This document shows, piece after piece, positions 215 to 58,270 of a DNA stretch of 64,000 nt. Numbering within the stretch: position 1 is the stretch's first letter; each line of letters opens with the position of its first letter. Origin of the DNA: Haliotis rubra (taxonomy: Eukaryota); the NCBI RefSeq assembly GCF_003918875.1, contig NW_025767019.1, positions 620,001-684,000 on the forward strand, written 5' to 3'. The notes under the pieces were generated by a model that was not told the DNA's origin, did no database searches, and was given only the letters and a program-made list of their open reading frames with translations. Made by a program: the position numbers and the translations under genes.

Positions 215-11180
<10,966 letters not shown>

Positions 11181-12328: not shown

Positions 12329-12545
12329 CTTTTTATCCAACAATATTTCACCTCACACGAAAATCTCTACCCCTGTCCGGGTAAGTGTTGTGTTGAACGT
12401 CATCGATTAATGTGTTCAGTAACCTGTGCTTTTACAACTCAAATTACTCTTTCATTCACCCATCTTTCGGCACGGAAGGGAGAAAACTGGAGAAGAACAG
12501 TAATTGGAAAGCTGAAGTCATGTGACTTGCACAAAATGGCGGAAG
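12329..12545. promoter_or_regulatory. Putative bidirectional promoter between R3HCC1L (-) and the TIR-TIR-SLOG gene (+)
   Basis: Minus-strand donor AAAG|GTAGAT at 12329 (likely non-coding exon 1). Plus strand has GTCATGTGAC (CLEAR/E-box-like, 12517-12526) and CAAAATGGCG (YY1-like, overlapping ATG 12536). Local CpG enrichment. Confidence 0.55.
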
Positions 12546-14598
12546 GTGGGAAAGTTGAATAGCTCTGTTATTTACCAGCAAACGTTTGTTCTGATCATCA
12601 TGCAGTGTCATTAAAAATTTTTGATTCGTTTCATAGTAGCGATAAACAAATCATTCTTGTCTTTTCAGTAGGTCTCTATGCGGCATGGTAGATACTGGCT
12701 CCTGTCAGTGTCAAATTTGGCAACGTGGTTGTTGACAGAACATGTTGTGCAAGACTCTACTGGCTGCCGAACAGTTATCGCCGTATTTTAGCGGTACAAA
12801 ATTATTCCGCCAATCGTTAAATTAATGAAGCAGAATTAATTTTGATACTCAAGTAGCTATTCACCGATGTGTCCAGACCGTTCACTGCCGCCGATTGTGT
12901 ATTTATATAACGCGGCGGAAGGGAATCATGGCAGTACAAATCGATGTTTTCTCACAGCTAACTGTAAAAGTTATATCCAGTTTAGCATGTCTTATGTCAT
13001 TCGTGAAATATAATATATTCATATCATAAAGTAACCTAGAATAATTGATTGTGTGACTAGTTGAGTGGTTTTTTTAACAGTAGATTGATAGTGAGTGAAA
13101 CAATTAATGACTTTTGTGAACTTGAAATTGCTATTATATACATCGCGTGACATTCTCCCGACTAAGTTAAAAAAAAATATATGGTTCATAGCTTTATCTT
13201 TGATTTTTCTCTTATTTTACTTACCATTAAGAATTTTCTTTTGCAGTCCTTTATTGTTGTCAAATACCATGAGAATAAATACCGGAATTGTAATTGACCG
13301 GAACTGATTTATTGGCGATAACTGTTCGGCAGGTAGTAGCTGAAAACATTTTCCCAATAGATACAAACCACTAATGCTAACTGCTTTCGTCTGCAGCTCA
13401 AACATCAGTACAGATTCTTATATCCAAAAATATAATAAAGAAGTTTTCATCCATAAAGTATAATACCTTTCTTATTATTCATCAACTTTTGAAATGTCAG
13501 TCAAACAGATCATACACCACAGTCATTCATTCAGATGAAGAGTTTATTTAATGGCTCCTCATATGTACATAAGACTGGCTAAATATCATGAGAGTGGTGA
13601 CTGACAGAGACATCAAATCTAAAAAATTGAAGGATGTACTATTAAATCTAATTGAGGTTTTTACATTGATGACATGTGTTTGAAACAGAAATGTCAAAAT
13701 TATACATTGTTTTAAAACAAATAATCCAAAGGAATTTCCTTGTTATCCCCCTTTGTTATCCCTAATGTAATCATGACTACAAAATGTTGGCAACTGACTA
13801 TACTTAAGTAAGATCTATAATTCAGTATGTGGTAAATATGATCTGCAAGACCCATGAAGATCCGGGTTTGAATATTGGTCTTTAGTAACCCATGCTTGTC
13901 ATAAGAGCCTAATAACGGGATCGGGTGGTCAGGCCCTCTGACTTCGGTTGACACATGTCATGACACATATCCCAATTGCGTAGATCGATGCTCATGCTGT
14001 TGATCACTGGATTTTCTGGTCCAGACTCTATTATTTACACACTTATAGCTGGAATATTGCTGAGTACGGCATTTAACAACAAATCAACCAACCAACCTTT
14101 AACACAATATGTTGAAATACAAATTATTTGCTTGAAGAAAGTCCAGTATCTGTATCAGAGTGTTTGTGTTAGCCTGTGCTAGTATGTTGGCCTATGTTTT
14201 CAGCTGGAGAGGAGGCTGATGAACCACTGATTGTTGGTGTGTCTGTTGTGTGTGAGACCAGCATCCAACCACATCTAACACTAGGCTGCCTTGTCCTCAA
14301 AGAGTCCCAGAAATCTGAATCTCTCTCATCTCTTCGATGTCAGATAAATGCCCAAATAAGAAGTCTCCCATCTGAATACATCTTCGTCACATCTCACAGG
14401 TTCATAAGTCTTTGTGAATTTTGTCCTTTCATATTTAACTTTCAAGTGATTATGTTATAATCTGATAACAGCACATTATTGTATTACAAGGAATTTAGAT
14501 ATAGACAGAAGAAATGTTTGGTTATACTGTCTATTTGAATGGCAAAACTAACTCTTGTTGTTACTTACTTTCTTACTTACTTACTAGCCGTTACTAAA

Positions 14599-14631
<33 letters not shown>

Positions 14632-17600
14632 GGGGCGGTGGGGTAGCCTAGTGGTTAAAGCGTTGGCTCGTCACACCGAAGACCCGGGTTCAATTCCCCA
14701 CATGGGCACAATGTGTTAAGCCCATTTCTGGTGTCCCCCCCATGCTGAATATTGCTGTAAATAAACTCATTCAGTCAAACTTACTTACTTACTTACTTAC
14801 TTACACTCACTTACTTTANNNNNNNNNNNNNNNNNNNNNNNNNNNNNNNNNNNNNNNNNNNNNNNNNNNNNNNNNNNNNNNNNNNNNNNNNNNNNNNNNN
14901 NNNNNNNNNNNNNNNNNNNNNNNNNNNNNNNNNNNNNNNNNNNNNNNNNNNNNNNNNNNNNNNNNNNNNNNNNNNNNNNNNNNNNNNNNNNNNNNACTTA
15001 CCGCGTTGCTCTTAGCACATAAGGCCGTTACTAGAGTTTTCCAATGCTGTCTATCCTGGGCCCATTGCTTGCCCCTGTCCCCAGGTCCACCCTTCGTCCT
15101 TCATCTCTGCCTCCACAGATCTTCTCCATGTCTCTTTTTATCATAGGATATTTATATAGCGCACATATCCAGGCAACTAGTGCATGCTCAAGGCGCTGGT
15201 ATTTGTCCCCTCGATCATTGGATGTCAATCTCAACGTCACATCGTATTATCAATCTCAACTCCCTGGGGAGTATACAACTCTTGCAGCCACTAGGCGCAC
15301 CGAGTTATTGTGGTTTTCTCATCCTAACGAGCTAGCCATTCACAGCTGGGTGGACTGGGACACATAGTCACAGTACTTTGTCCAAGTTCACTGCACGTTG
15401 CTGTACCCGCAACTAGGTATTTACACGTATTCATGTGGCCACCATCTGGTCATATACCAACGGATTCATGGGTTCTTTTAAGTGCGGAGGGTTGTGTACT
15501 GTACACTAGGGGTTGCACACAAAGTTGACTCCAAGGTTGTTTTACACCCGGTCACAGGTGGGCTCGATCCTGACACCTCAACCTCGCTGGATCACTAGCC
15601 TGGCGCCTTAGCCAGCTCGCCCACCGCGCCCCCTTGGGACATCCTCTGTTTCTTTTTCCTGTTGGTGTCCATCGCATAGCAACCCTTGGTATGGAATCTG
15701 GGTGCATCCTGCAGACATGACCGATCCAACGCCATCTTCTCTTCTGGATCTCGAGGGACAGTGGGCTGGTGTCCGATAGTTCTTCATTTTAGACGGTGCT
15801 TGGCCAGAAGATGCAAAGTATTCTTCTGAGACATCTGGTTTGGAATACATCAAGTTTGTTGCAGATGTTGTGGGATATTTTCCAGGATTCTGCGCCATAC
15901 AATAGGACTCCAAGAATGTTGCTCTTGAAGATTCGCAGTTTGGTGACTGTGCTGATTGATTTTGACCTCCAGATGTTCTTCAGTGAACTGAACGCTCCGC
16001 TAGCTTTGCCTATTCCCGACTGTATATGTGCTTCTGAGTTGCCGGTGGCTGTGATCTTGCTGCCAAAATAAGAGAAGTCTTGAACTTTGTCAATGTTTGT
16101 ACTTCCAAGGGATACAGGCAGTGTAGATTTAGCATTAATCTTGAGGATTTTGGTCTTTTCAGTGTTGATCTTCAAGCCAATCGTTTCTCCTGTTGTGGCA
16201 AAGTCTTGTGTTTTGTTTTGGATGTCTTGGAAACATTGGGCAAGTAGGGCAATGTCATCAGCAAAGTCAAGATCTTCTAGACTCTTGGTGAATGTCCAGC
16301 TGATTCCTCTTTGCTTGCTCTTGGTGACTCTCTGTAGTATCCACTCCAAGCAGAGGGTGAAGAGGAGTGGGCATAAGCCTTGTTTCACTTCTGTTCTACA
16401 GCATTTTCATGATAGAGATTAGTTTGTCTGTGATCCCATAGTGGGCGAGGACTTTCCACAGAGTGGCTCTGTTAATACTGTCGAAGGCCTTGGAAAAGTC
16501 TATGAAGTTGGCATAGATGGTTGCGTTCCATTCGTTACTTTGTTCTTCCTTTCCTGAAGCCAGCTTGTTCTTCTCGCATGAGCGTGTCCATGGTTCTCGA
16601 ACGTCTGTTGAGGATTACTCGGCTCAGTACTTTGCTGGTGACAGAAAGCAACATTATCTCTCTCCAGTTGTTGCAGTTGGTCAACCCCCTTTCTTTGGCA
16701 GTTTTACTCATAAGTCTGTCTTCTAGGTCTCTGGTGCTTCTTCAGACTCCAACATGTTTGATATTATGTCTGTTAGTAGCGCTGGTATTACTGAGTCCTC
16801 TCCCTTGAGCATATCTGCATATATCTGGATCTTTCCTGGTGCTTTCCCGTTCTTTAGTGCCCTTATTGCTCTTTTCACCTCTTCAATGTTGGGTGGTTCT
16901 GTGCTGATGTCCAGCTGTCGGCTGCAGGTTTGATGTTTGCTTCTATATCTGGATCTTCCCGGTTCAGCACTTTCTCGAAGTGTTCTTTCCAGCATTGCAA
17001 GACTTCTTCCTCTTTGGACACAATGTTCCCTGTTGGTGTCTGACTGGTCCAGCTGCAGTTTGGCATTTCCCTGAGTGTGTCTTGGTCAGTCTGTGGAGGG
17101 TTTTCATGTCTTGTTTGGATGCTGCTTGCTCGGCTTCCTCTGCTATTCTTTCAATGTTATTTCCTCTTGTCTGATCTTGCTCCCTTTTTCACTTCTTTGT
17201 CCAAAGCTTTATAGCTTGTCTGCAGTTGTTCTTTTAATCTCTGCGACCTGGTGCCAAGGATTTTCCTCTTTTCTTCTTGTTGTTTCAGGATTGATAATTT
17301 CTTTTACACCATTAGATGTTAATTCCTTAAAAGTTTGGGTCGTCTGACTGTGATATAGAGTTGACTTGTATTGTGTCTTCCTGCCACTAGGTGGCCTGTT
17401 GAGAGAAGTCAGGAAAGCTCACTTCATCTTCAACACATTTTGACTCCAGAGGAGCTGTATGGATCAGCAAGCAATATGGTAGGTCACTGTGTTGTTTTTC
17501 ATTCACAAGGTCTTTGAAATATGGATGAAATACTCCCAATATGATGTATTATTTAAATTTAAACTCACTCTTTATATATCTATTAGTTTAAGGAGCCCCC

Positions 17601-20600
17601 AGTTTACACTGTGGATTTGTGCTTCTTGCTAGTAACTGCTTGTTCTATTCCCATATTTGCTTTATGATTTGTGTGTGTGGCAGAACCATGCCTTCTCATT
17701 TAATGGTTTTACTGAAGTGGTATTAACATCTGAAACTTGTGTTAGTTGAACTTTTGTTGAACATTATGCTGACAACACCAAATGCCATTAAACCAAACTC
17801 ACTCACACATGTGACAGAGCTTCATGCAAGCTTCATTGTCAACCTTCAACAGATAAAACAAGACTTGAAAATGTATCTGATCCCGGCCATTTGCCTGTTT
17901 GTCTTGTACCATTGTGTTTTGACAATATTGGTCTCTTTTTAATAAAGCATATGACTTTATGGATAACAACTTCTTGTTTACTGCTAGAGTGGCGTTTGCG
18001 GTGTAGATTCTTACACCATTTTCAAGTCTACAAGTGTGATATATTTTGGTCACATGAACAGGGAGTATATTCATCACTCTGTTACTGTTATTCAATATTA
18101 TTCCAGCAAAGCCAAAGATTGGAATCAAAGCTAAGACTGGCATGGCCCTGGGCTTTGTGTTTACAGACTTCACCAGCAGACTGTCCAGTCTTCGACAGGC
18201 CATCAACCAAGAGGTGAAATATGTCCCTCACACATCAGTGATGACATCAGTACATTGAGAATATGGCACAAAATTATAGGATAAGATCCAGTGGAAGTGC
18301 TGATAAATTGGTTCACCCATCAAATGGAAATTTGCTTGACCAATCCTGGACAGTAGAAACTAAATTCAGCAATTTGGACTGGAGGGTATACCTAAATATG
18401 GTGCGATATTTGCAGTTGGATAAAATGGTTCTGTCCGTCTTGAAGCTTTTTAATATGTCTTATGTACAACTTTTGGTTGTGAGAAAGAAAACAATGCAGA
18501 ATAAAAAAAGTACAGAGAATGGAAAATATTTTTCATCATGAATACCCTACATTTTATATTTTCTTTAAGACATTTATGGTTTCCTCCAGAGCTGGGTTTT
18601 CCTTCAAGCGTCACATCAATGTGGCAAAAGACAGTAACATTGATAGTGATTAATGTCCAAATGGATTTTGTGATGTGATGTGATGTATTGGGAATAAAAA
18701 TTGAATCATGCAAGTCGGACAGTATTATTTGATGTCTGAAGATGACAATGGAATGTTCATCCATATTTCAGTTAGCATTTTTTTGTGGGATTCCAAACAC
18801 CTACATGTTCTTGGATCCAAACGGTTGGCCGATTAGCAAGAGCCTGGAGTCTGATTGGTCAGTTCTTGACGTTGTCGTAGATGGCTGTGTTGTTGTGTGT
18901 GCAGACACCATGTCCATGGATATGATAGAAAACAAAAATGATATTGATCTGTTTCCCGCCTTCGAACCTCCCCGCAAGAAGATCAGAAGGTATTTATTAA
19001 TATTTGTTGTTCATGAGTAACTGGAGCATTGTGTAGGCAACCTGTGTAATCATGCGAACCCAATAGTACTGAATTGTTTGGAGGACAACTGAAAACTCAA
19101 TGATTGATAGTCAAAGACGGATAACCCCAAATCCACAAGTGTAGCTTGACAAGGGAGGTAACTCTGTGGGTAACCCTTGAAATGAGGATATTGTAACAGA
19201 TATGCTAGGTGAAGATTACATGTAATATAATGGAGAGTGAAAATTAGAATGCACTTTTCCACTATCTATAACCTAATTTGTCATTTTTCTGGTTTTAAAA
19301 GACTAAGACAGCTGAGTTTCCGCACATCGAAGGATACAGATCGGCAGTCGAGTGTTGATGTGACGGAAGTGACTGACACGTCACCAGACACGAAGCAGCT
19401 TCTCATCAGCTATGTTACGTGCCGAAGCTGCTGACCATGCCCTCAAGTTGAAGGAGGAGTTGTCTGTCCTTGGATTTAGCGTGTATTTGGTATGATGATA
19501 CATTTGAACATAGAGGTGATGAGATATTTCAGCAGAATTAAATCACATCTACTTTATTTTTACATGATTTCCTTCATGTATGTTCTATATTTAGGTATTT
19601 AATTACACATTCAACTCAAGCCCAAGCCATAGTTATATTTCTTGAGAAAGTATGAAACCTGTCCATTCTTTGACCTGTAGTTTCCAACTGATTCAGTATT
19701 GTGAAGCCGATCCTAAGTCTGTAGGGTGTAAACTGCCTCTAAGCTGCTTCTGTGCTTCTTTCAGGACGTCCATGAGATAAAGAGTGGAGTAGACTGGCAG
19801 GACTCCCTAAACGATGCTGTCAGCAATTGTGAGGTGTTTGTGCCCCTCGTTACACCGAGATATGGCGAGACACAGTGGACAAATAGAGAGGTGGGTGCTG
19901 CTTGGTGTATACATGTATAGCTAAATGACTGGTTCATCTCTTTCAGTCTCTCACACAAATCATGATTGGCGCATACAGTCATTTATGCAGAGCTGATTTT
20001 GTTTAGTAGGTGTCATCAAAGTACCACAAACACTGGTTTCTGAAGCCACACCAAAATCAGGAAACAAAAATGCTGGCTTACACAATGTTTGATTTTTGTG
20101 ACTTGTTTTAAACATATTTTATTCGTGAGAAAAGGATTGGGAACAAGTTATACAACTTAGAACACCCTCTCCGTAGTATTTACATAGTATTATTTACATT
20201 CATTCTACAAGATGGACAGAGAAGAACAGAACAGAAATATGGGAAAAAGAGGAACAATTGCAACAATTAAGAAAATCGTTTTGAATGACAAATATATGTT
20301 TGAACAATTTTAAATATGTTTTGATTTATGTGAACAGTCAGATCTGCATTGCCATGTAATAGTAACTCATAGGTTATATCCACATTTTTGTGACTTCACT
20401 GCAAACAGAATCTAAGTCTGCTGAAACTAGCATCACCCATTAACCACCAACATTAAACTCCTTGACAATTGTTGGTGCATGCATGCAGACAAAATCTGAA
20501 TCTGCTGAAACTAGCATCACACCATCAACAGCTAACATAAATTCTGTGACCACCCCAGGTATAAACTTGCTGACTTGCCATTGCCTGCTCTAGGTGAAAC

Positions 20601-23600
20601 TGGCAGACGTGTTGGGCAAGTATATACTCCCGGGTCAACTTCCTGGACACTTGGCCGCCCCGATGTCTGGCAATACAGTTCGCAACAACACAGTACATCT
20701 GTTGGAAGTCTCCAGCTCAGATACAGACAGGTGGGTTGCCAGGATCAGTGCCGATACTCTCAACACTCACTCTTTTAATAAAGTTTAAGTCAGACCTGTC
20801 TATGACCATTTTTCAGACATTTGTTTCAAAATGCCATGAAAATTGGAACACAGGTGGTGGTGCTCAGTCATGTATATTCCATCTTTTGTCGTATTATATA
20901 ACATTTTGGCCTGTGCACTTTTCACCGTTTTGAATGCTGAAACTTACGGCTTAGTAGTGATATTAAGGTTGACTTTTGCTCTTGCTCTTTGTCTATGTTA
21001 CAAAAATGCATTTTAGCTCAAGAACTTAATCTCCTGAAATTGATGGACTTCATACAGGGATTTACAGGACGCGAATTCCTGCATCCTATATGCATAAAAA
21101 ATTGACAATGGACGCAACCAAATTTATTAGCGCGTCCACAGGGACTCAGAAAAAGTACAAATACTATTTGTAAAAATTCCAATCAAGTGACAATAAGTTA
21201 TCGGTGAGTTTGCTATTAGCTGGGTTATGGTAATATTTGCAATTTAATTACTGTAACAATGTGATGATCATGATACACAATACAATAACGGTATTAATAA
21301 TAATATTTAAGAGTCTGGGACACCCATTTTGTTGTCCAGGACCCCTGAAAATTAGTATGAGTATGAGTCCCAGGGATCCTCAAATACAGAACCCCATGTA
21401 AATCCCTATTGATAGAGCTTAGCATCTGCTTGTATCTTTCTCCTAAGTTTGACATCATATTTGATGAACCTTTCAGGTTTTGGTAAGAGTTTTTAGTCCT
21501 TCAGTAAATTGTTATCACTTCTGACTGCAATTTTACTTTCTTGACATTTTCAAACTGTTAACTACATATCTAGGTGAGCTACAGTGATTCTATTGTTCAT
21601 TCTTCCTCTCGTACTACCAATGTCTCTCATTAAACAGGAAATTGTTTGATGGATATTGATTTGCCATAAGTAATGAGTCTGCTTGTAATTCTTGTACAGA
21701 GGTGGATCAGGGGAAGGGCTCTCAGGCCACAGACATCCGCATCTGGGACAGAGGGTATATAGAACAAACGGCCAGCCAGATTGGAGAGAGGCTAGAGCAA
21801 CTCAGACAGGGAGTGATGAACAGAGTTCCCTCCCTTACCCGCCGGGTAAGTACAAGCTTGCTCATATGCTTAGGCTGATCCTAGAGAGGCAATGTGGTTG
21901 TGTTTCTCTCTATTTTGTTTCGTTATTTTGTTCTTTATAGGGATTCCAGCAGAATAGGGTCCTGAGACCTCCTTTCTGACAAAAGAACTAACTTGTATGG
22001 GGAGCAGGGCCACCTCGAGGGTGTTGAACGCAATTGTTTTTACCAGCGTAAACCTTTTTAGTCTCCATTGTGTCAGACATTGGTGTTGTCACACTATCAA
22101 GGGGAGATTCTTGAGAGGCATTTAGAAGTTGGTGAATATATAAGACGAGTATATGGATGGCAACTTCTTGTTTATTGTATAACACAACGCTTCTGGGCTA
22201 CTTTTTGCCCCTTCATCAGGTAATTCTAATCACGTGAACAAGGGGCAAGAAGTAGCCCAGAAACAATAAACAAGAAGTTGCCATCCATATACAAGGGGAG
22301 ATATTCAAGGAGAGATTTGTGTGCGGAGTTGCTGCCCTTAGTCATGGGTTTGAATTCCGGATTGCCCTTAATATGTGTTTTGTTTTACCCAAGCCATACA
22401 CATGTTTGTGGGTTTATACTGAAGTGGTAAATGTTTAAAACCTGCACCATTTCTAGCTTCCCTGAAATGTCAAGCTGTGATTGTTTTAATGGAGTTAAAC
22501 CCAAATGACTCACTCACCCATTTGACCACTGGTTTGTCTGGTCCAGGCTTATTGTACTGTAGCTGACCAGGATATTACCCATAGTACCTGACTTATTCTT
22601 ACTTAAGCCTTACTTAATATCAGTTTTGATTTTTATGTATTTTCACAGAAACTGTTGGCATATGTCTGTAGGATCTCACTATGTAATATCTCTTCGGCAG
22701 AAAACTCTGATGAAAACATTTGCCGGCAAGCTGCCGGAGGGCATCGTCAGTATAGACGAGTCTGTAAACGGGGAGAAGGCGTTGGTTGTTATCTGTGTGC
22801 ATCCCAACCAAACTGCATTTGTAAGTATAGATGTCATAACTGGCGACTTGTACATGTTACAGCGAGCAGCTTATTCATTTCATGACTAGCAATTATATCA
22901 CCGGTATGTCCTGACTAGCAGAATTTACAAAGCTTACTTACTGCCTCGGTTGTGCAGTGGATAGAGTATGTTGAAGGTCAGTGGTTTAATTCTGGTTGTG
23001 TGATGCTTACAGAAGTTGTAAGAGTCTTATGTTGTGGGGTAGACACATTAAACTGAGCCTAACATGGTCTAGTGGTCTAACGCTATAAACCCAGAATACA
23101 TCTGGGCGAGCACAAGTAGCCACACTCACATGTAGGTGAATGCAGGCAACCATCTTTATAGCGAATATGCTTGTAATGAACTCAGGGATATAACTAACTA
23201 AGAATACACAATGCCATTTAGAAAGTGCTCTGAAATTCAAACCCTTACTCTCAAAGTCAGGTACCTACTCCCCAGCACAGAAAGTCAGCAATCTAACCCA
23301 ATCTGCCACCTCGGCTTCCATTTAATGGTTCCACTGTGTTGACATATGTCATCATATCCCAATTGCGTAGATCGATGGTGATTATGTTCATTACTAGACT
23401 TGTATATTTACATGTAGCAGGAATATTGCTTAGTGCAGTGTTAAGCAACAAACAAACCTCATACATGTTGTCTGTCCACAGGCTAAGAACCTGTGGCAGC
23501 TCCTTGAGGGGGCGGGGCTGGGGGTGTGGTGTACAGCAACACACAAACCTCATACATGTTGTCTGTCCACAGGCTAAGAACCTGAGGCAGCTCCTTGAGG

Positions 23601-26600
23601 GGGCGGGGCTGGGGGTGTGGTGTACAGCAACACACAAACCTCATACATGTTGTCTGTCCACAGGCTAAGGACCTGAGGCAGCTCCTTGAGGGGGCGGGGC
23701 TGGGGGTGTGGTGTACAGCAACACACAAACCTCATACATGTTGTCTGTCCACAGGCTAAGAACCTGAGGCAGCTCCTTGAGGGGGCTGGGGGTGGGGTGT
23801 GGTGTACAGCAACACACAAACCCCTTGAGCATACATGTTGTCTGTCCACAGGCTAAGGACCTGAGGCAGCTCCTTGAGGGGGGGGGCTGGGTGTGTGGTG
23901 TACAGCAACACACAAACCCTCATACATGTTGTCTGTCCACAGGCTAAGGACCTGAGGCAGCTCCTTGAGGGGGCGGGGCTGGGTGTGTGGTGTACAGCAA
24001 CACACAAACCTCATACATGTTGTCTGTCCACAGGCTAAGGACCTGAGGCAGCTCCTTGAGGGGGTGGGGCTGGGTGTGTGGTGTACAGCAACACACAAAC
24101 CTCATACATGTTGTCTGTCCACAGGCTAAGAACCAGAGGCAGCTCCTTGAGGGGGCGGGTCTGGGGGTGTGGTGTACAGCAACACACAAACCTCATACAT
24201 GTTGTCTGTCCACAGGCTAAGGACCTGAGGCAACTCCTTGAGGGGGCGGGGCTGGGGGTGTGGTGTACAGCAACACACAAACCTCATACATGTTGTCTGT
24301 CCACAGGCTAAGAACCTGAGGCAGCTTCTTGAGGGGGGGGGCTGGGGGTGTGGTGTACAGCAACACACAAACCTCATACATGTTGTCTGTCCACAGGCTA
24401 AGAACCTGAGGCAGCTCCTTGAGGGGCTGGGGGTGTGGTGTACAGCAACACACAAACCTCATACATGTTGTCTGTCCACAGGCTAAGAACCTGAGGCAGC
24501 TCCTTGAGGGGCGCGGGCTGGGGGTGTGGTGTACAGCAACACACAAACCTCATACATGTTGTCTGTCCACAGGCTAAGAACCTGAGGCAGCAACACACAA
24601 ACCTCATACATGTTGTCTGTCCACAGGCTAAGAACCTGAGGCAGCTCCTTGGGGGCGGGGCTGGGGTGGGTGTACAGCAACACACAAACCTCATACATGT
24701 TGTCTGTCCACAGGCTAAGAACCTGAGGCAGCTCCTTGAGGGGGCGGGGCTGGGGGTGTGGTGTACAGCAACACACAAACCTCATACATGTTGTCTGTCC
24801 ACAGGCTAAGGACCTGAGGCAGCTCCTTGAGGGGGCGGGGCTGGGTGTGTGGTGTACAGCAACACACAAACCTCATACATGTTGTCTGTCCACAGGCTAA
24901 GGACCTGAGGCAGCTCCTTGAGGGGGCGGGTCTGGGGGTGTGGTGTACAGCAACAGGGGAGAGAGACACAACAGAGTCAGAGTCAGACACTCTACCCCTC
25001 AGCCAAGACAGTAAGTTGTACAGATACAGCTAACCTAGTCAGTCACACAGCAGCTGAACCATACTGTTCTCTCTTCTGCTCAACACTCTCTGTAATGATT
25101 TAGCACTGAAAGAAGCAAGTCTAGATTTACACAGGTTGTGAATCTCAATTTCCTTAGTGCTTCTTTTTAAGTTAAATGTAGTTGATTTATTTCTCAATCA
25201 TTTTTATATATTTTCAGAGACTGAGATTTAGCCAAATGGTAACAGCTTGCTGTAGTGGATCAATTTTTACATAATAAAGAGATTATGCATAAAACATCTG
25301 TCTAAATACATAGCTCAAGAGTTCAGAAGCAGATCAGATGACTTATTGTATGGTAAGATCAATTACTTGGTCTGATTTTCTGACCTACTTATTTCAGTTT
25401 TGGGAGCCAAGAATTAAACAACAATGTGTTAACCCTGTGTCCTAGCAACCAGAAATTCCAAGAATTTGCAGACAGGGCATCTGTTGTTATCATCATTTTG
25501 TCACAAGCTTTCTCAAGGTCAAGGACATGTCAGCAGCAGGTGAGAAATTGAATAAATTCTATGTTTGTGTATTCTGTTTGCTCTGCTGAAATATTTTGAA
25601 ACTTATCCTATCTCTCAATTCTAATGCAGGTGTTTTATTGTGAGCACCGGAAGCGAGTGATTCCTGTCAAGTTTGAGGAGTTTCGCATGCCTGGCTGGTT
25701 GAGTATGCTGATTGGGACAAACTACATTGAGGTGAGACCTTGGGACCAACTCTTTTGGGGTTAGAAATTGGGAACAACTATTTGGAGGTACAACATTGGG
25801 ACCAACTGCATTGAGGTGAGACACTGGGGCGTACTCTTTTGAGATAAGACATTGTGCTCAACGCCTTTGAGTTAAGACATTGGCACCAACTCCATTGAGG
25901 TAAGACATTGGGACCAACTCCATTGAGGTAAGACATTGGGACCAACTCCATTGAGGTGAGACACTGGGGCGTACTCTTTTGAGATAAGACATTGTGCTCA
26001 ACGCCTTTGAGTTAAGACATTGGCACCAACTCCATTGAGGTAAGACATTGGGACCAACTCCATTGAGGTAAGAAACTGGGACCAACTCCATTGAGGTAAG
26101 ACACTGGGACTGACTCCTTTGAGGGAAGACATTGGGACTGACTCCTTTGAGGGAAGACATTGGGACTGACTCCTTTGAGGTAAGACATTGGGACCGACTG
26201 CGTTGATGTGAGACATTGGGACCAACTCCATTGAGGTAAGTCACTGCGTTGATGTGAGACATTGGGACCAACTCCATTGAGGTAAGACACTGGGACCAAC
26301 TCCATTGAGGTAAGACACTGGGACTGACTCCTTTGAGGTAAGACATTGGGACTGACTCCTTTGAGGTAAGACATTGGGACCGACTACGTTGATGTGAGAC
26401 ATTGGGACCAACTCCACTGAGGTTAGATATTGTGACCAACTGCATTGTGGTAAGACACTGGGACTGACTCCTATGAGATAAGACATTGGGACTGACTGCA
26501 TTGATGTGAGACATTGGGACCGACAGCATTGATGTGAGACCTTGGAACCAACTCCATTGAGGTGAGACCTTGGGACCAACTCAATTGAGGTAAGACATTG

Positions 26601-29600
26601 GGACCAACTGCATGGAGGTAAGACCTTGGGGCCAACGACATTGAAGTTAGAAATTGGGACCAAATGCATTGAGGTAAGACACTGGGACCAACTGCATTGA
26701 GGTAAGACACTGGGACCAACTCCTTTTGGGTAAGACACTGGGACCAACTCCTTTTGGGTAAGACACTGGGACCAAATGCATTGAGGTAAGACACTGGGAC
26801 CAAATGCATTGAGGTAAGACACTGGGACCAAATGCATTGAGGTAAGAAACTGGGACCAAATGCATTGAGGTAAGACACTGGGACCAAATGCATTGAGGTA
26901 AGACATTGGGACCAACTCCTTTGAGGTAAGAGACAGGGACCAACATTTTCTACTGCTTGTTTTTATTGTCTGTCACACCATATTGTGAGTTTGTGGTGAT
27001 GGATATCTTTGTTTTCCAACAGAGCGTGAAGCAGACAAACTTCGGACAGAGTCTGTTGACGCGGGTCCAGAGGTGTACCGATCCCAGCAGCTGCAACAAC
27101 CTGCGGGAGGAGTTTGATGAAGTCCGACTCACACGTACAGTGAGTAGTCCTACATCATCATAGCCATTATGTCCATGAATGTTAATTTTAGCTGGTCCAT
27201 TTGCTATTGGCCAGATTCCATGAACCAGGTTTATGGTCATGGCACTACATAAGGTGTGCAAGGTGTGCTTCCAAAGTGGTTAAGTTGTGCAGAGTTTTCA
27301 CAGTTTCGAGACTAATTAGTCTTTAATAAAACAACATTGTTCACATAATCAGGTTGATAATCTTAAAGCATATCAATGCTGTTTTCAAAATTTTGAAATT
27401 GACATTGACTTTTGAAACGCAAAGAATTTAGGGGAGGCGAGTCCATAAGGAATGGACATGCCACTGGAGTGTCTAAATTTGGGCCTGTGAGAATTTGCCC
27501 ATAAAACTAGCACAATCATCAATTTTAAGTCCGAGTCAGAGTAGTCTCCCTTGGCTGCTTAGTAACCAGAGGTTTTGTGGTATTTTTTTCTGAGACAGTG
27601 ATAATAAGATGATAATAAGAGTTCAAGTTAAAATCTGAGGCTTCGTAGTCCCAGGTAGTTGTTGTGTCATTTGTTTGATAGCTCTGGTAATACGGGAAAA
27701 GTGGTACTGAAGTGTTATGATAACTCTGCAGGTGAACCACATCAAGGGTCGAGTCGGGCAGACGTCTTGTGTGTACATCTCTGGCAGCACTAAGTTCTAC
27801 AACACCATCACTGAGGCCGTCTGTCGGTAAGTTCAACATAAATCATCAGATAAAAGTTAGCCTAATAGTTGAAAATAATGTAACTTTACCCATCATTCTG
27901 TCTGTTCTTTTTGTCAGATCAATTGGAAGTGAGTTGGCGCAGCTCCCAAACATCGCCATGGCAACTGGTGGGTTTTTTGGTGTTGGCGAAACTGTCAGTC
28001 TGACTTTTTATGAGGAATCTCAAAGACTGTGGAGGAAGAACAGTGTGTGGCATGTCCTGCCTGAACGTGATAACCAGGTCAGAGTCAGGATATATTCCTA
28101 AAACAGTTGACTGTACCCGTGAAGATCTGGGTTAGATCTTCAGTAACTCATGCTTGTCGTAAGAGGCTGACTAATGGGATCGGATGGTCAGGCTCGCTGA
28201 TTTGATTGACACATGTCATCGTATCCCATTTGCGTAGAACGATGATCAAGATGTTGATCACTGGATTGTCTGGTCCAGACTCAATTGTTTACAGACCGCC
28301 GTCACATAGCTGGAATATTGCTGAGTGCGGCGTAAAACTAAACTCACTCACTCACTCACTCACTCAATTTGGGAACTGACACATTCTAGAGGGGCGGGCA
28401 CACATTCTTTTTAAGGAGAGAAAATATTTTCAGATATTTGTTACAACTTAAAATACTTTTATGCTTACTAATTTATTGTCACACATGTCAACACAACTGC
28501 ATTGTGTGTAGGAGTTAAGCATTACCAAGCATTGTTTCCAAACAATGGAAGACAAACATGCTTTTGTTACAAATGTAGGGATTATGTAAGCACCGATATT
28601 GTGCTTCATTCTTGATTGTCTCATAGAGAGGGTACAGTATATGAATTAGCATGGGTTTTGAAGGTTTTACAGGGGGTTGATTTATTGGTGGGGTTGCCCT
28701 ACAGATGGCAATATACCTTTAGATCTTTTATTTGTGAATGTACATACTAAAAGTAATTGTATAAATTAGACTATGACTACAGTTACTCATTGGTGCAATT
28801 TTAACAATATTACTGAATGCAGATTGCTGTGTCACTGAATGCACTGGGGTTTTTTTCCTTTCAGAATATTGAAAGTTGTAATACGCAGCTGACAGTGTCT
28901 TGGTGATATGGTTAAGTGTAATAATGGAGATTGATATCTTGAAAATGGTTCAGTGATCATGTATACAACCACCAGGTTCTTTTTTCCCAGGATCGACACC
29001 AGCAAGCCCGCCAAAATCCAGATCTCACCTTCGGTATTGTTCCTTTTGGGAAGACAATATTCTGTGGCGACAGTGTGCGTGAGAGGGAGAATGTCGTGGC
29101 TCGAACTTTTGATGTCTGCATTCTCATTGAAGGTGAGTCAGTGTGTCACAAAGTCAGATTTGGTTTGGTAAATTAGAAATGGTTCCACCCATGAAGATCC
29201 GGGTTAGAATTGGTCTTCAGAAACACATGCTTGTCATAAGAGGCGAGGGTGGTCAGGCTGGCTGACTTGGTTGACACATGTCACCGTATCCCAATTGCAT
29301 AGATTGATGCTCATGCTGTTGATCACTGGATTGTTTGGTCCAGACTTGATTATTTACAGACTGCCGCCATATACCTGGAATGTTGCTAAGTGCAGCATTA
29401 AACAACCAACCAACCAAGAAATGGTTCCCAGCAGCCTGTGCCGAGCATGAGACATGACCAAATGTCCTTGGTTATTTGGGTCAGTGACTGAACCGATGTG
29501 TCACCCCAGGGGCAAGGATCACTGGATTATCGGACCCAGACTCTCTACAGATCTGAGTGCAGCAATAAACAACACAGTCAAGGTCTTTGGGGAATATCAA

Positions 29601-31583
29601 ACACATACCTTCAATATCTTTATCTTCTTTGTTTTGTTATGTTTATATTTCTGTGACAAAGACTTTTCTGCTTTTCTCATTGCATGGAGTCATTGCACAC
29701 TTTCAGTCAGTAGTTGTGCTAATCAAGATTTGCTGAATGCTGTTGTATTGTTGGCTATAAAATGTTGTTTTCTCTTCTAATAAGCTACAGTATATTAACA
29801 GCAAACAAGAAACATCAACCAAATGGGGGACTGAGTATGATCAGGTCCTCGGCAATTTATGTTGTCATAGGAAGCACTAAATTGGATCGTGAGGCACTGC
29901 TTGTTCACTTGGTTGATTGATTGTAGCCGCTAGGTGTGGATGGTTGCTCTGAATATCAATCACTGGCTTGTCAATTATGTATTGGCCATTTTTGTGTGTG
30001 TTAAGCTAGAATCAGAAAATGAAACATCATGTGATCATTATTTCAGTGCTGGAATGACAGCCAGTAACATGAAGGTTTTGCTTTTGTATTGTCAAGAACT
30101 ATCGATTATGATATTTGCACATGCTTTTCCCAGTCAGATTTTGTAAGGAGTTAAATTCACAGCTTTAAAATTGTATATATGCACCATGAAGGTCGCTTGT
30201 CTATATGGTGCTGTCAGTCAGAAGGTTCCTAATTTTGGGTTTCGCCACTAGGTGGCCCTGGTGCAGCACATGAGGCAGAACAGTTTGTATGGAACGACCA
30301 TGTTGTGATCCCGGTCCGGTGCACAGGGGGCGCTGCAGGCGGCAAGTTTAGCATCCCAGACAAGATATTTGAGGTTTGTTTGTTTTATTCTTTGTTTGAT
30401 TAATGTCACACTGAGTGCTTCCCTAGCTTCAGATGGCTGTAAGCAATCGAGTCATTTGTAGCTAAGGGCCATTTTAAACACAGATCTCCTTAGAGACATT
30501 TGAGATGGGCAGATCATATCTCGACTTACTTTCATGAGTTTCCTTAGTGACCAGATATTGTAGAAATACATGCACCTTTATGACAGGTTCTGTGATACAT
30601 TGATTTACTGTATTGTAAATGTGTCAAACTACTCCATGTAGTTAATATCAGTCTTGGCATTACAGTTTAACTATAGTTGTATAAATGATAAGGTTGTGTC
30701 CAAGTCCTCTGGAGTAGTATATATAGGAGAATAGGGTGCATTTACTATAATCAATGGAAACGGACATATGTTTTTAAAACTATTTACCAAAAATCGACAT
30801 AAAGAAGTTTCGCATAGCTCTCTCGTTTTCGTTGCTCTCCCATGAATTATTTATTGAAACTGGCAGGTATACAGGTATACAAAGAGAAAACAGAATATGT
30901 CAATTATGTAATATGAATACTGTTGAGGATGAACTACATTTCCTTCTAATCTGTCCTGTTTATACGACTCTACAAACAAAATACCTAAAGCCATACTATT
31001 ATAAGCATCCAAGTGTAGGAAAATTACTTTCACTATTAACAGATACTACCACATCACTATTACAGAATCTGGCAATGTACATCTTTTTCGTTATGAGTTT
31101 AAGAAAAAGTATTGTTATAGAGATGAATTTATAAATTACTTCTATCTACTCATGTAAACTTTAAATGTACTATAGGCCTTTGGCCTTTTTAAGTCCTGAA
31201 TAAAGATTGATTGAAGTGTGAATGTTCATGATGTTATTGTGTTTCTTGTGAAACAACAAGTTTGTTGTGTGCCTGGTTGCTGAAGGATTTCATAGATAAA
31301 TTGTTAAATGATTGGTTATCAGGTACCACATGGAGTGTCAGAATATGATTGGAGCATGCTTGGCAAACCAGATGTCTCAGCCATTGAAATTGGCCAATCA
31401 GTGAGCAGGATTGTACAGGCACTGTTTGACAAGATGTCAACAGAAGATTTAGCATCTCAGCAAGACACACCCACAAAGGTCACCAGTGTGACCCCCTCAA
31501 TGTCCCCCTGCAAGACCCCTAGCCCATCTCGGGTAGCAGGAAAACCCAGTCTCACAACCATGAGGACGGTGCTACTTGGCTAA
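12536..31583 (+). CDS. Uncharacterised ~863-aa protein: two ubiquitin-like N-terminal repeats, TIR, TIR-like and SLOG (SMF/DprA/LOG-fold) domains; 19 exons
   Basis: GT-AG exons: 12536-12545, 14204-14399, 17391-17478, 18107-18213, 18772-18989, 19302-19489, 19765-19890, 20594-20730, 21700-21845, 22701-22820, 24896-25010, 25398-25539, 25630-25731, 27023-27139, 27732-27826, 27918-28077, 28991-29132, 30252-30373, 31323-31583 (TAA). Phases are consistent apart from four 1-bp indels (~17450, ~19416, ~20632, ~25398). TIR motifs LLISYVRAEA..LGFSVYLDVHEIKSGVDWQDSLNDAVSNCEVFVPLVTPRYGETQWTNREVKLA; SLOG motifs VYISGS, ATGGFFGVGE, LIEGGPGAAHE, VIPVRCTGGAA. Confidence 0.85.
13849..14096 (+). mobile_element. 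~250-bp interspersed SINE-like repeat (family 2)
   Basis: Near-identical copies at 28115-28366 and 29187-29416; shared tail gctggaatattgctgagtgcggc..(caac/ctca)n. Confidence 0.8.
14560..14818. repeat. (CTTA)n microsatellite, probably the (TAAG)n 3' tail of the minus-strand RTE LINE; next to assembly gap 14819-14995
   Basis: cttacttact.. runs on both sides of the SINE at 14632; the LINE 3' end resumes just after the N gap. Confidence 0.75.
14632..14777 (+). mobile_element. Short tRNA-derived SINE (family 1)
   Basis: A box TAGCCTAGTGG, B box GGTTCAATTCC, conserved body cacatgggcacaatgtg..gcccatttctggtgtccc; copies at 50060 and 57028. Confidence 0.85.
14996..17300 (-). mobile_element. Degenerate RTE-clade LINE (reverse transcriptase and C-terminus), 5'-truncated
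   Basis: ORF fragments KAPGKIQIYADMLK, FIDFSKAFDSI (16470-16510), LEDLDFADDIALLA, LLYGAESW and the terminal RGRP..ETWRR..WKTLVTALC; several frameshifts. Confidence 0.88.
15135..15634 (-). mobile_element. ~500-bp tRNA-headed SINE inserted into the LINE 3' coding region
   Basis: Minus strand begins GGGGGCGCGGTGGGCGAGCTGGCTAAGGCG..GGATCGAGCCC (A/B boxes). It splits the LINE between ..GAAGATGTCCCAA and GAGACATGGAGAAG. Confidence 0.65.
19395..20730 (+). other. TIR domain 1 (TIR_2/SARM-like, catalytic Glu present) of the TIR-TIR-SLOG gene
   Basis: QLLISYVRAEAADHALKLKEELSVLGFSVYL|DVHEIKSGVDWQDSLNDAVSNCEVFVPLVTPRYGETQWTNRE|VKLADVLGKYILPVNFLDTWPP after correcting two 1-bp insertions; the Glu codon is GAG at 19888-19890. 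Confidence 0.85.
21055..21408. mobile_element. Possible MITE (hAT-like termini)
   Basis: cagggatttaca at 21055 and tgtaaatcccta ending ~21408; no clear target-site duplication. Confidence 0.4.
22150..22295 (-). mobile_element. Penelope-like terminal-repeat remnant in inverted arrangement with a hammerhead-like core
   Basis: Inverted pair (tatatggatggcaacttcttgtttattg..ttctgggctactttttgcccctt / aaggggcaagaagtagcccagaaacaataaacaagaagttgccatccatata); minus strand reads CTGATGAAGGGGC..GCCCAGAAGCGTTGTG. Confidence 0.5.
22775..25731 (+). other. TIR-like domain 2 (Glu replaced by Gln)
   Basis: ALVVICVHPNQTAF|AKDLRQLLEGAGLGVWC..FQEFADRASVVIIILSQAFSRSRTCQQQ|VFYCEHRKRVIPVKFEEFRMPGWLSMLIGTNYIE follows the TIR beta/alpha pattern. 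Confidence 0.7.
23452..24955 (+). repeat. 91-bp minisatellite (~17 copies) made of a splice acceptor plus the 5' part of exon 11 of the TIR-TIR-SLOG gene
   Basis: Unit acacacaaacctcatacatgttgtctgtccacag|gctaaggacctgaggcagctccttgagggggcggggctgggggtgtggtgtacagca; only the last copy continues into unique exon sequence and a GTAAGT donor at 25011. Confidence 0.92.
25711..26942 (+). repeat. 28-bp minisatellite (~44 copies) made of the exon 13 3' end plus its splice donor
   Basis: Unit attgggaccaactccattgag|gtaagac; the first copy is the real exon end attgggacaaactacattgag|gtgagac. Confidence 0.9.
28115..28366 (+). mobile_element. SINE-like repeat family 2
   Basis: Matches the 13849 and 29187 copies; (ctca)n tail. 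Confidence 0.8.
29187..29416 (+). mobile_element. SINE-like repeat family 2
   Basis: Matches the other copies; flanked by the direct repeat agaaatggttcc (target-site duplication). Confidence 0.8.
30760..31214 (+). mobile_element. 3' fragment of a CR1/L2/Crack-type LINE
   Basis: ORF SHELFIETGRY..RICQLCNMNTVEDELHFLLICPVY (C-terminal CCHC-like motif of LINE ORF2), followed by aataaa and an (attg)n tail. Confidence 0.75.
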
Positions 31584-57196: not shown

Positions 57197-57306
57197 CTTG
57201 GTTTCATTCAAGAGAGACAAATCCATTAATCCGTTTTCATTAGTTTGTGAAGAGTTATTCCCCTTTGTTTACTTGCTAGCAGATGACATTTTCAGTGATC
57301 CTCAGT

Positions 57307-58270
57307 ATGGATGATTTAGAGAAGAGGAAGTTGATTTTAGAGTATTGTAACAAGGATATCAGATCAGCTAAAGTGATTTCAAGTAGAACAGGCATCCCTT
57401 TGTCCACTGTTTATTGTGTTTTGAAAAATATTGCAAATGGATATGGCATTGAGCACCAGGGAGGCGCAGGTAGGCCCAGAAAATTGACTGACGGTGACAG
57501 GAGGTGGCTTGGTATTCTTGTTTCTAAAAACAAACGAAGGAGTTTAGAAAACGTAAGGCTGGATATCATTGATAGAGGAACTGTGGCTGTCTGTAAGGAG
57601 ACAATTAGAACTGAGCTGCATGCAATGGTTTGGCAGAAAAGTCGAGGAATTCCATCACCAATCATGAAACCTGAACAAAAGGAGCGAAGGTTGAACTGGT
57701 GCTTACAGCATAGAAATTTTAACTGGGACAATGTGATTTTCTCAGATGAAAGATCTCTGTGGCTGTTTCCTAATACACTGAAATTCTTGACCAAACAAAC
57801 TGAAAAACCTTTGTATCAGCACCCAAAGTACAGTCCGAAATTTAACGTGTGTTGTGGCATATCTGTGTTAGGGGCAACGCCCCTCTGTGTATTTGAAGGG
57901 AATAGGAACAGTGAGCGGTACACAGATATTCTCGAGGGACATTTACTTCGATCTGCTCACGTGGATTTTCCAGCAGGACAACAATCCAAAACATCGTTCA
58001 AAGCATTCACAGGCCTGGTTTCGGACCCAAAATATGACATTATTAGATTGGCCAAGCTATAGCCCTGACCTAAATCCAATAGAAAATGTTTGGGGACTTA
58101 TGAAGGAAAGTGTCAATAAGAAAAATCTGACAAATATTGCTGAAATGAAAGAAGAGGTGGTCCGATATTGGGACAGCATGGACCACGACTTTCTAACTTC
58201 TTTGATCAGTAGTATGCCCCGCTGCATTGAAGCCTGCATTGCTGCCCATGGTGACTTGACAAAATACTAA
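57307..58270 (+). pseudogene. Tc1 transposase with a deletion/frameshift near 57960
   Basis: The overlapping ORFs 57283-58062 and 57887-58270 each carry part of the DDE domain. Confidence 0.85.

Follow-up and report, generated by a model that had tools for sequence, protein, structure and literature searches.

An intron-rich abalone gene encoding a Ubl-Ubl-TIR-TIR-SLOG protein of an ancient animal family, with homology to Thoeris components

The window analysed here, a 64,000-nucleotide stretch of the Haliotis rubra genome (contig NW_025767019.1, positions 620,001 to 684,000), contains a 19-exon gene on the + strand at 12536–31583. The gene begins with an ATG at 12536, ends with a stop codon at 31581–31583 and encodes a product of about 863 amino acids (aa) with two ubiquitin-like (Ubl) domains, two TIR domains and a C-terminal SLOG domain. 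It is an orthologue of an ancient animal family with the fixed architecture Ubl-Ubl-TIR1(Glu)-TIR2(Gln)-SLOG. The gene structure was established by tblastn with full-length homologues and by inspection of splice sites. A sequence-only reading of this DNA had proposed one intron-rich gene of 19 exons that no open reading frame displays as a single protein; tblastn, the splice sites and the orthology with H. asinina bear this out. The region has no long open reading frame, and the stop-free segments of its + strand bear TIR and LOG-like motifs.

All exons lie on the + strand. Exon 1 (12536–12545) consists of the ATG and seven further bases, followed by a GT donor; the start of the H. asinina protein, MAEAGEE, fits the split codon. 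The first Ubl domain is encoded by exon 2 (14204–14399) and ends in exon 3 (17391–17478). Exon 4 (18107–18213) encodes part of Ubl2, exon 5 (18772–18989) the rest of it and a basic linker, and exon 6 (19302–19489) the linker and the start of TIR1. The TIR1 core is located in exon 7 (19765–19890), which ends with the GAG codon of the catalytic Glu (19888–19890); TIR1 continues in exon 8 (20594–20730) and ends in exon 9 (21700–21845), which also encodes a linker. TIR2 starts in exon 10 (22701–22820) and extends through exon 11 (24896–25010), exon 12 (25398–25539, with the Gln codon CAG at 25537–25539) and exon 13 (25630–25731) into exon 14 (27023–27139), which carries its end and a helix leading into SLOG. 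SLOG strand 1 and its Gly-Ser loop are encoded by exon 15 (27732–27826), the glycine-rich GGxxGxGE loop by exon 16 (27918–28077), the conserved Arg-Glu by exon 17 (28991–29132) and the GGPGxxxE motif by exon 18 (30252–30373). Exon 19 (31323–31583) comprises the end of SLOG, a Ser/Thr/Pro-rich tail, a conserved C-terminal motif and the stop codon. Orthologue alignment and splice sites define the 19 exons.

The 18 introns are all of the GT-AG type, and exon phases agree at every junction. In tblastn searches of the window with family proteins, the exon matches form a collinear series, and the locus is collinear with that of H. asinina. The conceptual protein, written with X at each of four frame breaks, contains no internal stops. 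Over its full length (865 columns), the spliced model shares 93.6% identity with the intact H. asinina protein (P0092); its identity to the orthologues of Babylonia (P0002) and Patiria (P0110) is 48% and 42%, respectively. The window exons are 81–97% identical to the intact orthologues of H. asinina (863 aa) and H. cracherodii (865 aa) and about 100% identical to H. rubra LOC124284791, which NCBI flags as 'LOW QUALITY PROTEIN'. This public H. rubra model is erroneous. Besides being frame-corrected, it translates exon 4 in the wrong frame, leaves out exon 5 and includes minisatellite units in the coding sequence.

When each exon was aligned to H. asinina genomic DNA (locus L001), exactly four one-base differences were found inside exons, the same number of indels as the sequence-only reading had counted. 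Near 17450 in exon 3 a G run is one base shorter in the window than in H. asinina; at 19417 in exon 6 the window has one extra A; at 20633 in exon 8 a G run is one base longer; and in exon 12 the T run at 25398–25401 is one base shorter. Two frame breaks could formally be escaped by using a donor at 17482 or a different acceptor for exon 12; both solutions were considered and rejected, since the H. asinina DNA shows a single-base run-length difference in each case.

For domain assignment, the window model was run against profiles with X at the breaks, and folds were modelled on the intact H. asinina orthologue as a proxy. Family profiles span the conceptual protein end to end: the two Ubl domains at aa 1–191 (206 bits), TIR1 at 237–395 (243 bits), TIR2 at 431–590 (193 bits) and SLOG at 596–816 (335 bits). 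When single exons were scanned with Pfam, exon 7 alone was matched, passing the TIR_2 threshold (36.9 against 28 bits); the SLOG exons are individually too short.

When one SLOG exon was used as query in an exhaustive HMMER search, 74 proteins were returned. They include full-length proteins of about 750–950 aa, with the exon aligned near residues 560–780; these originate from gastropods, bivalves, echinoderms, one nemertean and one sea spider, and carry TIR_2 together with the SLOG families LDcluster4 and STALD. Their annotation is almost always 'uncharacterized', 'hypothetical' or 'TIR domain-containing'. Named full-length members come from molluscs (many gastropods, a chiton and bivalves), nemerteans, annelids, a priapulid, chelicerates, echinoderms, hemichordates, homoscleromorph sponges and Trichoplax; the bivalve Tegillarca has two adjacent family genes. 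Among the 120 matches listed there was no vertebrate, insect or nematode, which is no proof of absence. Several full-length members of about 840–930 aa (P0088, P0089 and P0167) are uninterrupted on contigs of 2.8–3.1 kb; such contigs are too short for introns and are probably transcript assemblies, which places TIR and SLOG on one mRNA. As in XP_076461074.1, P0092 and A0A914B4U3, for example, the window shows collinear full-length homology, Glu in TIR1 and Gln in TIR2, and a C-terminal SLOG; its frame, as assembled, is interrupted by the four one-base indels.

TIR1 is highly conserved, with 30 invariant columns, and its catalytic Glu is present in 58 of 59 family members. A search of the PDB with the TIR1 profile found the TIR domain of SARM1 (E 3e-10), with the family Glu aligned to SARM1 E642. 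The best NCBIfam match is ThcB4 of type III Thoeris (72.5 bits, E 2.8e-20, where the equivalog cut-off is far higher, at 220), and the best PADLOC match is ThsB1 (51.7 bits). TIR2 was matched by Pfam TIR_2 in all 58 segments scanned, so that the second TIR-like domain of the earlier reading is confirmed by Pfam as well as by the family profiles. Aligned to TIR1, TIR2 has Gln in place of the catalytic Glu, and this Gln is found in 56 of 58 members. In TIR1 and TIR2 alike, the exon ends with the codon for the catalytic position, and a phase-0 intron comes next; this shared placement suggests that the two TIR domains arose by internal duplication.

The C-terminal domain, which had been read from the sequence as SLOG, is assigned to this fold by the family profile, by Pfam and by structural matches. 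Pfam found LDcluster4 in 62 and STALD in 45 of 68 SLOG segments from the family. The SLOG of the orthologue scores 27.9 bits, above a cut-off of 26.3; the STALD hidden Markov model scores under its own cut-off (20.2 against 24 bits), with the Gly-Ser loop and the GG...E motif in place. The PADLOC ThsA/STALD model matched the SLOG of the family. The LOG family of Pfam gave no match at E 0.01; a related motif, EGGPGAAHE, is carried instead. Searched against PDB sequences, the SLOG profile gave only sub-significant matches (TRPM2, E 0.37; LOG, 0.51; TM1055, 0.67), and a fold search was therefore required. The AlphaFold2 model of the orthologue domain has a predicted local distance difference test score (pLDDT) of 95.8 and a predicted template modelling score of 0.92. 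Its top PDB matches in Foldseek are SLOG-type folds, namely TM1055, TRPM channels, the SLOG of BcThsA, PpnN and LOG. VIA-align gave Z 18.4 for TM1055, 17.6 for the BcThsA SLOG with 3'-cyclic ADP-ribose (3'cADPR; root-mean-square deviation 2.8 Å, 170 residues), 17.2 for PpnN, 14–16 for LOG and 13–14 for TRPM2.

The near-invariant pocket residues of the family SLOG are G31, G62, G63, G66, R130, E131, E145, G146, G147 and E153. They occupy the nucleotide-binding loops of the fold: the Gly-Ser/Gly loop after strand 1, GGxxGxGE, Arg-Glu and EGGPGxxxE. By a simple position offset, the first loop and the last Glu probably correspond to G289/S290 and E403 of BcThsA; in BcThsA these three residues contact 3'cADPR (10.1101/2022.05.07.491051). 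A profile search for short stand-alone SLOG relatives recovered mostly fragments of the same animal family and no close bacterial donor. Two unnamed LDcluster4 proteins (P0209 and P0210) are 31% and 35% identical to the SLOG. The nearest stand-alone LDcluster4 gene, 31% identical, is located on a compact prokaryote-like contig (L002, 1863–3503) and adjoins an ADP-ribosylglycohydrolase gene.

The N-terminal part of the protein (orthologue residues 1–205) was modelled by AlphaFold2 with a pLDDT of 90.5 as two beta-grasp units, which match linear di-ubiquitin, ISG15, FAT10 and the Ubl domains of USP7; the two ubiquitin-like repeats named in the earlier reading are thus substantiated. The idea that Ubl2 might serve as a tripwire, with a protease cutting after a ubiquitin-like GG motif, was dropped, as no GG motif follows this domain. 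The basic linker after Ubl2 (18960–19330, end of exon 5 and start of exon 6) has the sequence PPRKKIRR-LRQLSF, is conserved with Babylonia and looks like a nuclear-localisation or basophilic-kinase site. At the extreme C-terminus (31550–31580) there is a motif of the approximate form S-L-x-x-M-K/R-T-V/I-L/I-L-G, which is shared by most of the gastropods checked and by the chiton; a crinoid, a priapulid and a hemichordate have a comparable motif close to the protein end. Pfam scans found no leucine-rich repeat (LRR), SAM, death or transmembrane domain, as had been claimed from the sequence, and the top hydropathy window (1.65) is a Ubl beta-strand.

Two introns of the gene contain minisatellites that copy splice sites. 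In intron 10, a 91-bp unit is repeated about 16.6 times (23444–24955, + strand); it consists of a polypyrimidine tract, a CAG acceptor and the first ~53 nt of exon 11, and the last unit is the true exon start. The counterpart of this intron in H. asinina is only about 550 bp long. Some of the 91-bp units are treated as coding in the NCBI H. rubra model. In intron 13, a 28-bp unit is present in about 44 copies (25711–26944, + strand); it comprises the last 21 nt of exon 13 and a donor (GTAAG or GTGAG), so that the array offers dozens of decoy 5′ splice sites. H. asinina has a shorter version of the array, of about 430 bp.

Intron 2 (14400–17390) contains a block, 14525–17279, without counterpart in the H. 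asinina intron; the block is a lineage-specific repeat and retroelement insertion. It holds a non-coding assembly gap (14819–14995) flanked by (ACTT)n and, on the − strand, a reverse-transcriptase fragment of a retroelement (15789–16388, RVT_1, 32.9 bits). Exons 2 and 3, on the two sides of the gap, align to successive orthologue residues (aa 1–70 and 69–89), so the gap costs no exon or coding sequence and the frame is independent of it. Elsewhere in the window, a Tc1/mariner-type transposase (57283–58270, + strand) is split into two overlapping frames, with HTH_Tnp_Tc3_2 followed by DDE_3; the split reflects either decay or one more one-base assembly indel.

Animal TIR domains were long regarded as adaptors, and many have recently been found to be enzymes that make cyclic ADP-ribose (cADPR). 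A screen of animal TIR domains was reported in April 2026 (bioRxiv 10.64898/2026.04.20.719644). Row 129 of its Table S4 is the Patiria miniata protein A0A914B4U3 (857 aa, TIR 254–417, catalytic residue 327), which was active and gave cADPR after four hours; according to the text, the catalytic Glu was needed for activity in all cases. The tested sequence is the TIR1 of the animal TIR-TIR-SLOG family and is contained in P0110, and the TIR1 of the window is 78% identical to it. In the same preprint, SLOG is among the domains drawn in Figure 3, as stated in the legend, and Table S2 lists TIR(Glu)+TIR(His)+SLOG in the flatworm Macrostomum and TIR+SLOG in two tardigrades; the role of SLOG is not discussed in the text. 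A literature search by locus tags found nothing. The TIR-SLOG architecture and the chemistry of an orthologous TIR1 are thus already known, and the abalone gene is a new member of a barely studied family. The interpretation given in the sequence-only reading therefore stands for the architecture, in every domain, and for the Thoeris homology; its statement that no characterised animal gene has this architecture is outdated, and its proposal that the protein makes and senses its own signal is a hypothesis.

The best explanation of these data, to which we assign a probability of roughly 0.55, is that the locus is an intact gene for an ancient Ubl-Ubl-TIR1(Glu)-TIR2(Gln)-SLOG orthologue and that its product is a SLOG-gated TIR enzyme with a non-catalytic TIR2. 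By analogy with known sensor–effector fusions, a ligand-gated TIR enzyme in which SLOG is the gate would be the most economical reading. TIR2 would be a non-catalytic partner that helps to form or restrain the TIR–TIR contact; because TIR enzymes need such contacts, an inactive TIR2 on the same chain probably provides or prevents one. SLOG would provide a pocket for a nucleotide ligand of the ADP-ribose type, whose binding would be coupled to the TIR enzyme assembling and becoming active, as in the SLOG-SIR2 arrangement of ThsA and the STING-TIR arrangement of oyster TIR-STING. The SLOG domains of ThsA dimerise, and the ligand reorganises the oligomer and turns on the attached NADase (10.1101/2022.05.07.491051); PDB entry 8bto is among the structural matches of the family SLOG. 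The ligand may be the product of the protein itself, in a feed-forward manner, or the product of other TIR enzymes.

Several observations weigh against this reading. In the SLOG, an Arg and a Glu are conserved at a distance of 23 residues. This is also the spacing of the catalytic pair of LOG hydrolases, and SLOG could therefore be an enzyme and not a sensor. Canonical cADPR does not activate ThsA proteins, in which SLOG is the ligand sensor (10.1101/2022.05.07.491051), and a make-and-sense loop would accordingly need a pocket of different ligand specificity. The assay of the Patiria TIR was made with isolated TIR1 overexpressed in E. coli, in lysates taken at four hours (10.64898/2026.04.20.719644). 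Finally, one of the indels, the additional A at 19417, lies outside any homopolymer run, and a very recent pseudogene is therefore compatible with the sequence.

A more specific form of the SLOG-gated enzyme, which we regard as doubtful, would be a single-chain Thoeris-like unit kept since the first animals: cyclic ADP-ribose made by TIR1 would be bound by the SLOG of the same or a neighbouring chain, driving feed-forward assembly, with TIR2 as scaffold. To our knowledge, no animal receptor for a TIR-made cADPR signal is known beyond channels; such a unit, if real, would represent the first animal receptor dedicated to a nucleotide of TIR origin.

Among the alternatives, the one that survives best, though unlikely, takes SLOG for a LOG/PpnN-like N-glycosidase that processes or destroys the TIR1 product or another nucleotide, so that a signal would be made and then edited or ended. 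The LOG motif is PGGxGTxxE. The near-invariant R130 and E153 (in GGPGxxxE) resemble this motif and the Arg of LOG, and the top structural matches include the hydrolases PpnN and LOG as well as TM1055. The ADP-ribosylglycohydrolase gene beside the nearest stand-alone LDcluster4 gene also fits an enzymatic role, and some SLOG domains are predicted to cleave the ribosyl–adenine bond of cADPR-type signals (Iyer et al. 2022, PMC9503650). In contrast, Pfam assigns the domain to LDcluster4 and STALD, which are conflict-system families (STALD being the Sir2-/TIR-associating SLOG), and leaves the LOG family itself unmatched; moreover, the ThsA SLOG, a pure sensor, is level with the best structural matches.

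It is improbable that both TIR domains are purely protein–protein adaptors in Toll/IL-1-type signalling, with nicotinamide adenine dinucleotide (NAD+) chemistry playing no role in vivo. Such a role would suit the classical view of animal TIRs, and the preprint evidence for activity comes from overexpression in bacteria, its authors calling their conclusions speculative at the present stage (10.64898/2026.04.20.719644). However, the catalytic Glu has been kept almost without exception across the family over hundreds of millions of years, the TIR1 core is extremely conserved, the fusion partner is a nucleotide-binding SLOG domain, and the closest solved relative, SARM1, is an enzyme.

That the four frameshifts are real in H. 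rubra, where the gene would be a pseudogene with a working copy kept in other species alone, appears similarly improbable. The density of the indels, four in 2.6 kb of coding sequence, the NCBI quality tag and the one indel that is no run-length change are in its favour. The other three of the four, however, are homopolymer length changes in G or T runs, and the gene has no in-frame stop, lost exon or damaged splice site. Comparison of the window with H. asinina over 860 codons gave a ratio of nonsynonymous to synonymous substitution rates (dN/dS) of 0.107 at a dS of 0.27, and the gene is under strong purifying selection. The upstream neighbour is frame-broken as well: its large exon (3534–5371, − strand) is read in two frames in the window, as against one open 613-aa segment in H. 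asinina, and the split, near 4007–4031, involves a net difference of 10 bases in an A-rich stretch. In view of the broken neighbour, the low dN/dS and the absence of stops, exon losses and splice damage, assembly errors in a gene intact in the animal are much more likely than a pseudogene.

The remaining possibility, that TIR exons and SLOG exons belong to two adjacent genes wrongly joined, is extremely improbable, given that all domains occur in one protein of about 850–950 aa in orthologues of more than 10 phyla, some of them on intron-free contigs of about 3 kb, and that exon phases and the collinearity with H. asinina hold throughout.

A SLOG-gated TIR enzyme, as preferred here, would rest on a combination kept from sponges to sea urchins, in which one protein carries both a TIR of the active type and a SLOG pocket like that of ThsA. 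Since the two share one conserved chain, the question of a reader of TIR-made nucleotides in animals is directly testable with one recombinant protein of the family.

The nearest studied relative is Patiria A0A914B4U3, to which the abalone protein is orthologous over its full length (42% identity to isoform P0110, 78% in TIR1) and with which it shares the order TIR1(Glu), TIR2(non-Glu), SLOG. The cADPR result was obtained with the isolated sea-star TIR1 alone, whereas the abalone protein is known from sequence. The resemblance to Thoeris seen in the sequence-only reading holds at the level of homology, with TIR1 related to ThcB4/ThsB1 and SLOG to ThsA/STALD. As in type I Thoeris, the abalone protein has a TIR1 that matches the ThsB1 model and a SLOG that matches the ThsA/STALD model, and the family SLOG fold superposes on that of BcThsA with 3'cADPR (Z 17.6). 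In contrast to that system, it is a single eukaryotic polypeptide and not the product of two operon genes, Pfam scans found no SIR2 effector domain in it, and the product of its orthologue is canonical cADPR, which is non-activating for ThsA. Type III Thoeris likewise combines more than one TIR with SLOG and contains ThcB4, the best NCBIfam match of TIR1; however, the TIR1 score is far under the equivalog cut-off of 220, and the abalone SLOG matched no type III model. The bacterial signal of type III is itself uncharacterised.

Among solved TIR domains, that of SARM1 is the nearest in sequence, and its catalytic Glu aligns with that of the family; SARM1 is an NAD+ hydrolase/cyclase that also yields cADPR. 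The abalone protein differs in lacking ARM and SAM domains: TIR_2 and SLOG are the only families found, and the N-terminus consists of two Ubl folds. Its regulation, by analogy with ThsA, would go via SLOG and not via an ARM domain sensing nicotinamide mononucleotide and NAD+. The earlier statement that the protein is not SARM1, a TLR or MyD88 agrees with the Pfam scans, in which ARM-SAM-SAM-TIR, LRR plus transmembrane segment and death domain were all unmatched. The N-terminal MHR1/2 region of TRPM2 is another animal domain with the SLOG fold, solved in ADP-ribose-bound channel structures; it is part of an ion channel and is structurally more distant (Z 13–14) than ThsA, TM1055 and PpnN. Oyster TIR-STING and the bacterial TIR-SAVED and SIR2-SLOG effectors share with the abalone protein the fusion of a nucleotide sensor to an NAD+-consuming domain; to this plan, the abalone protein adds a predicted non-catalytic TIR2 and two Ubl domains, and its sensor would be SLOG.

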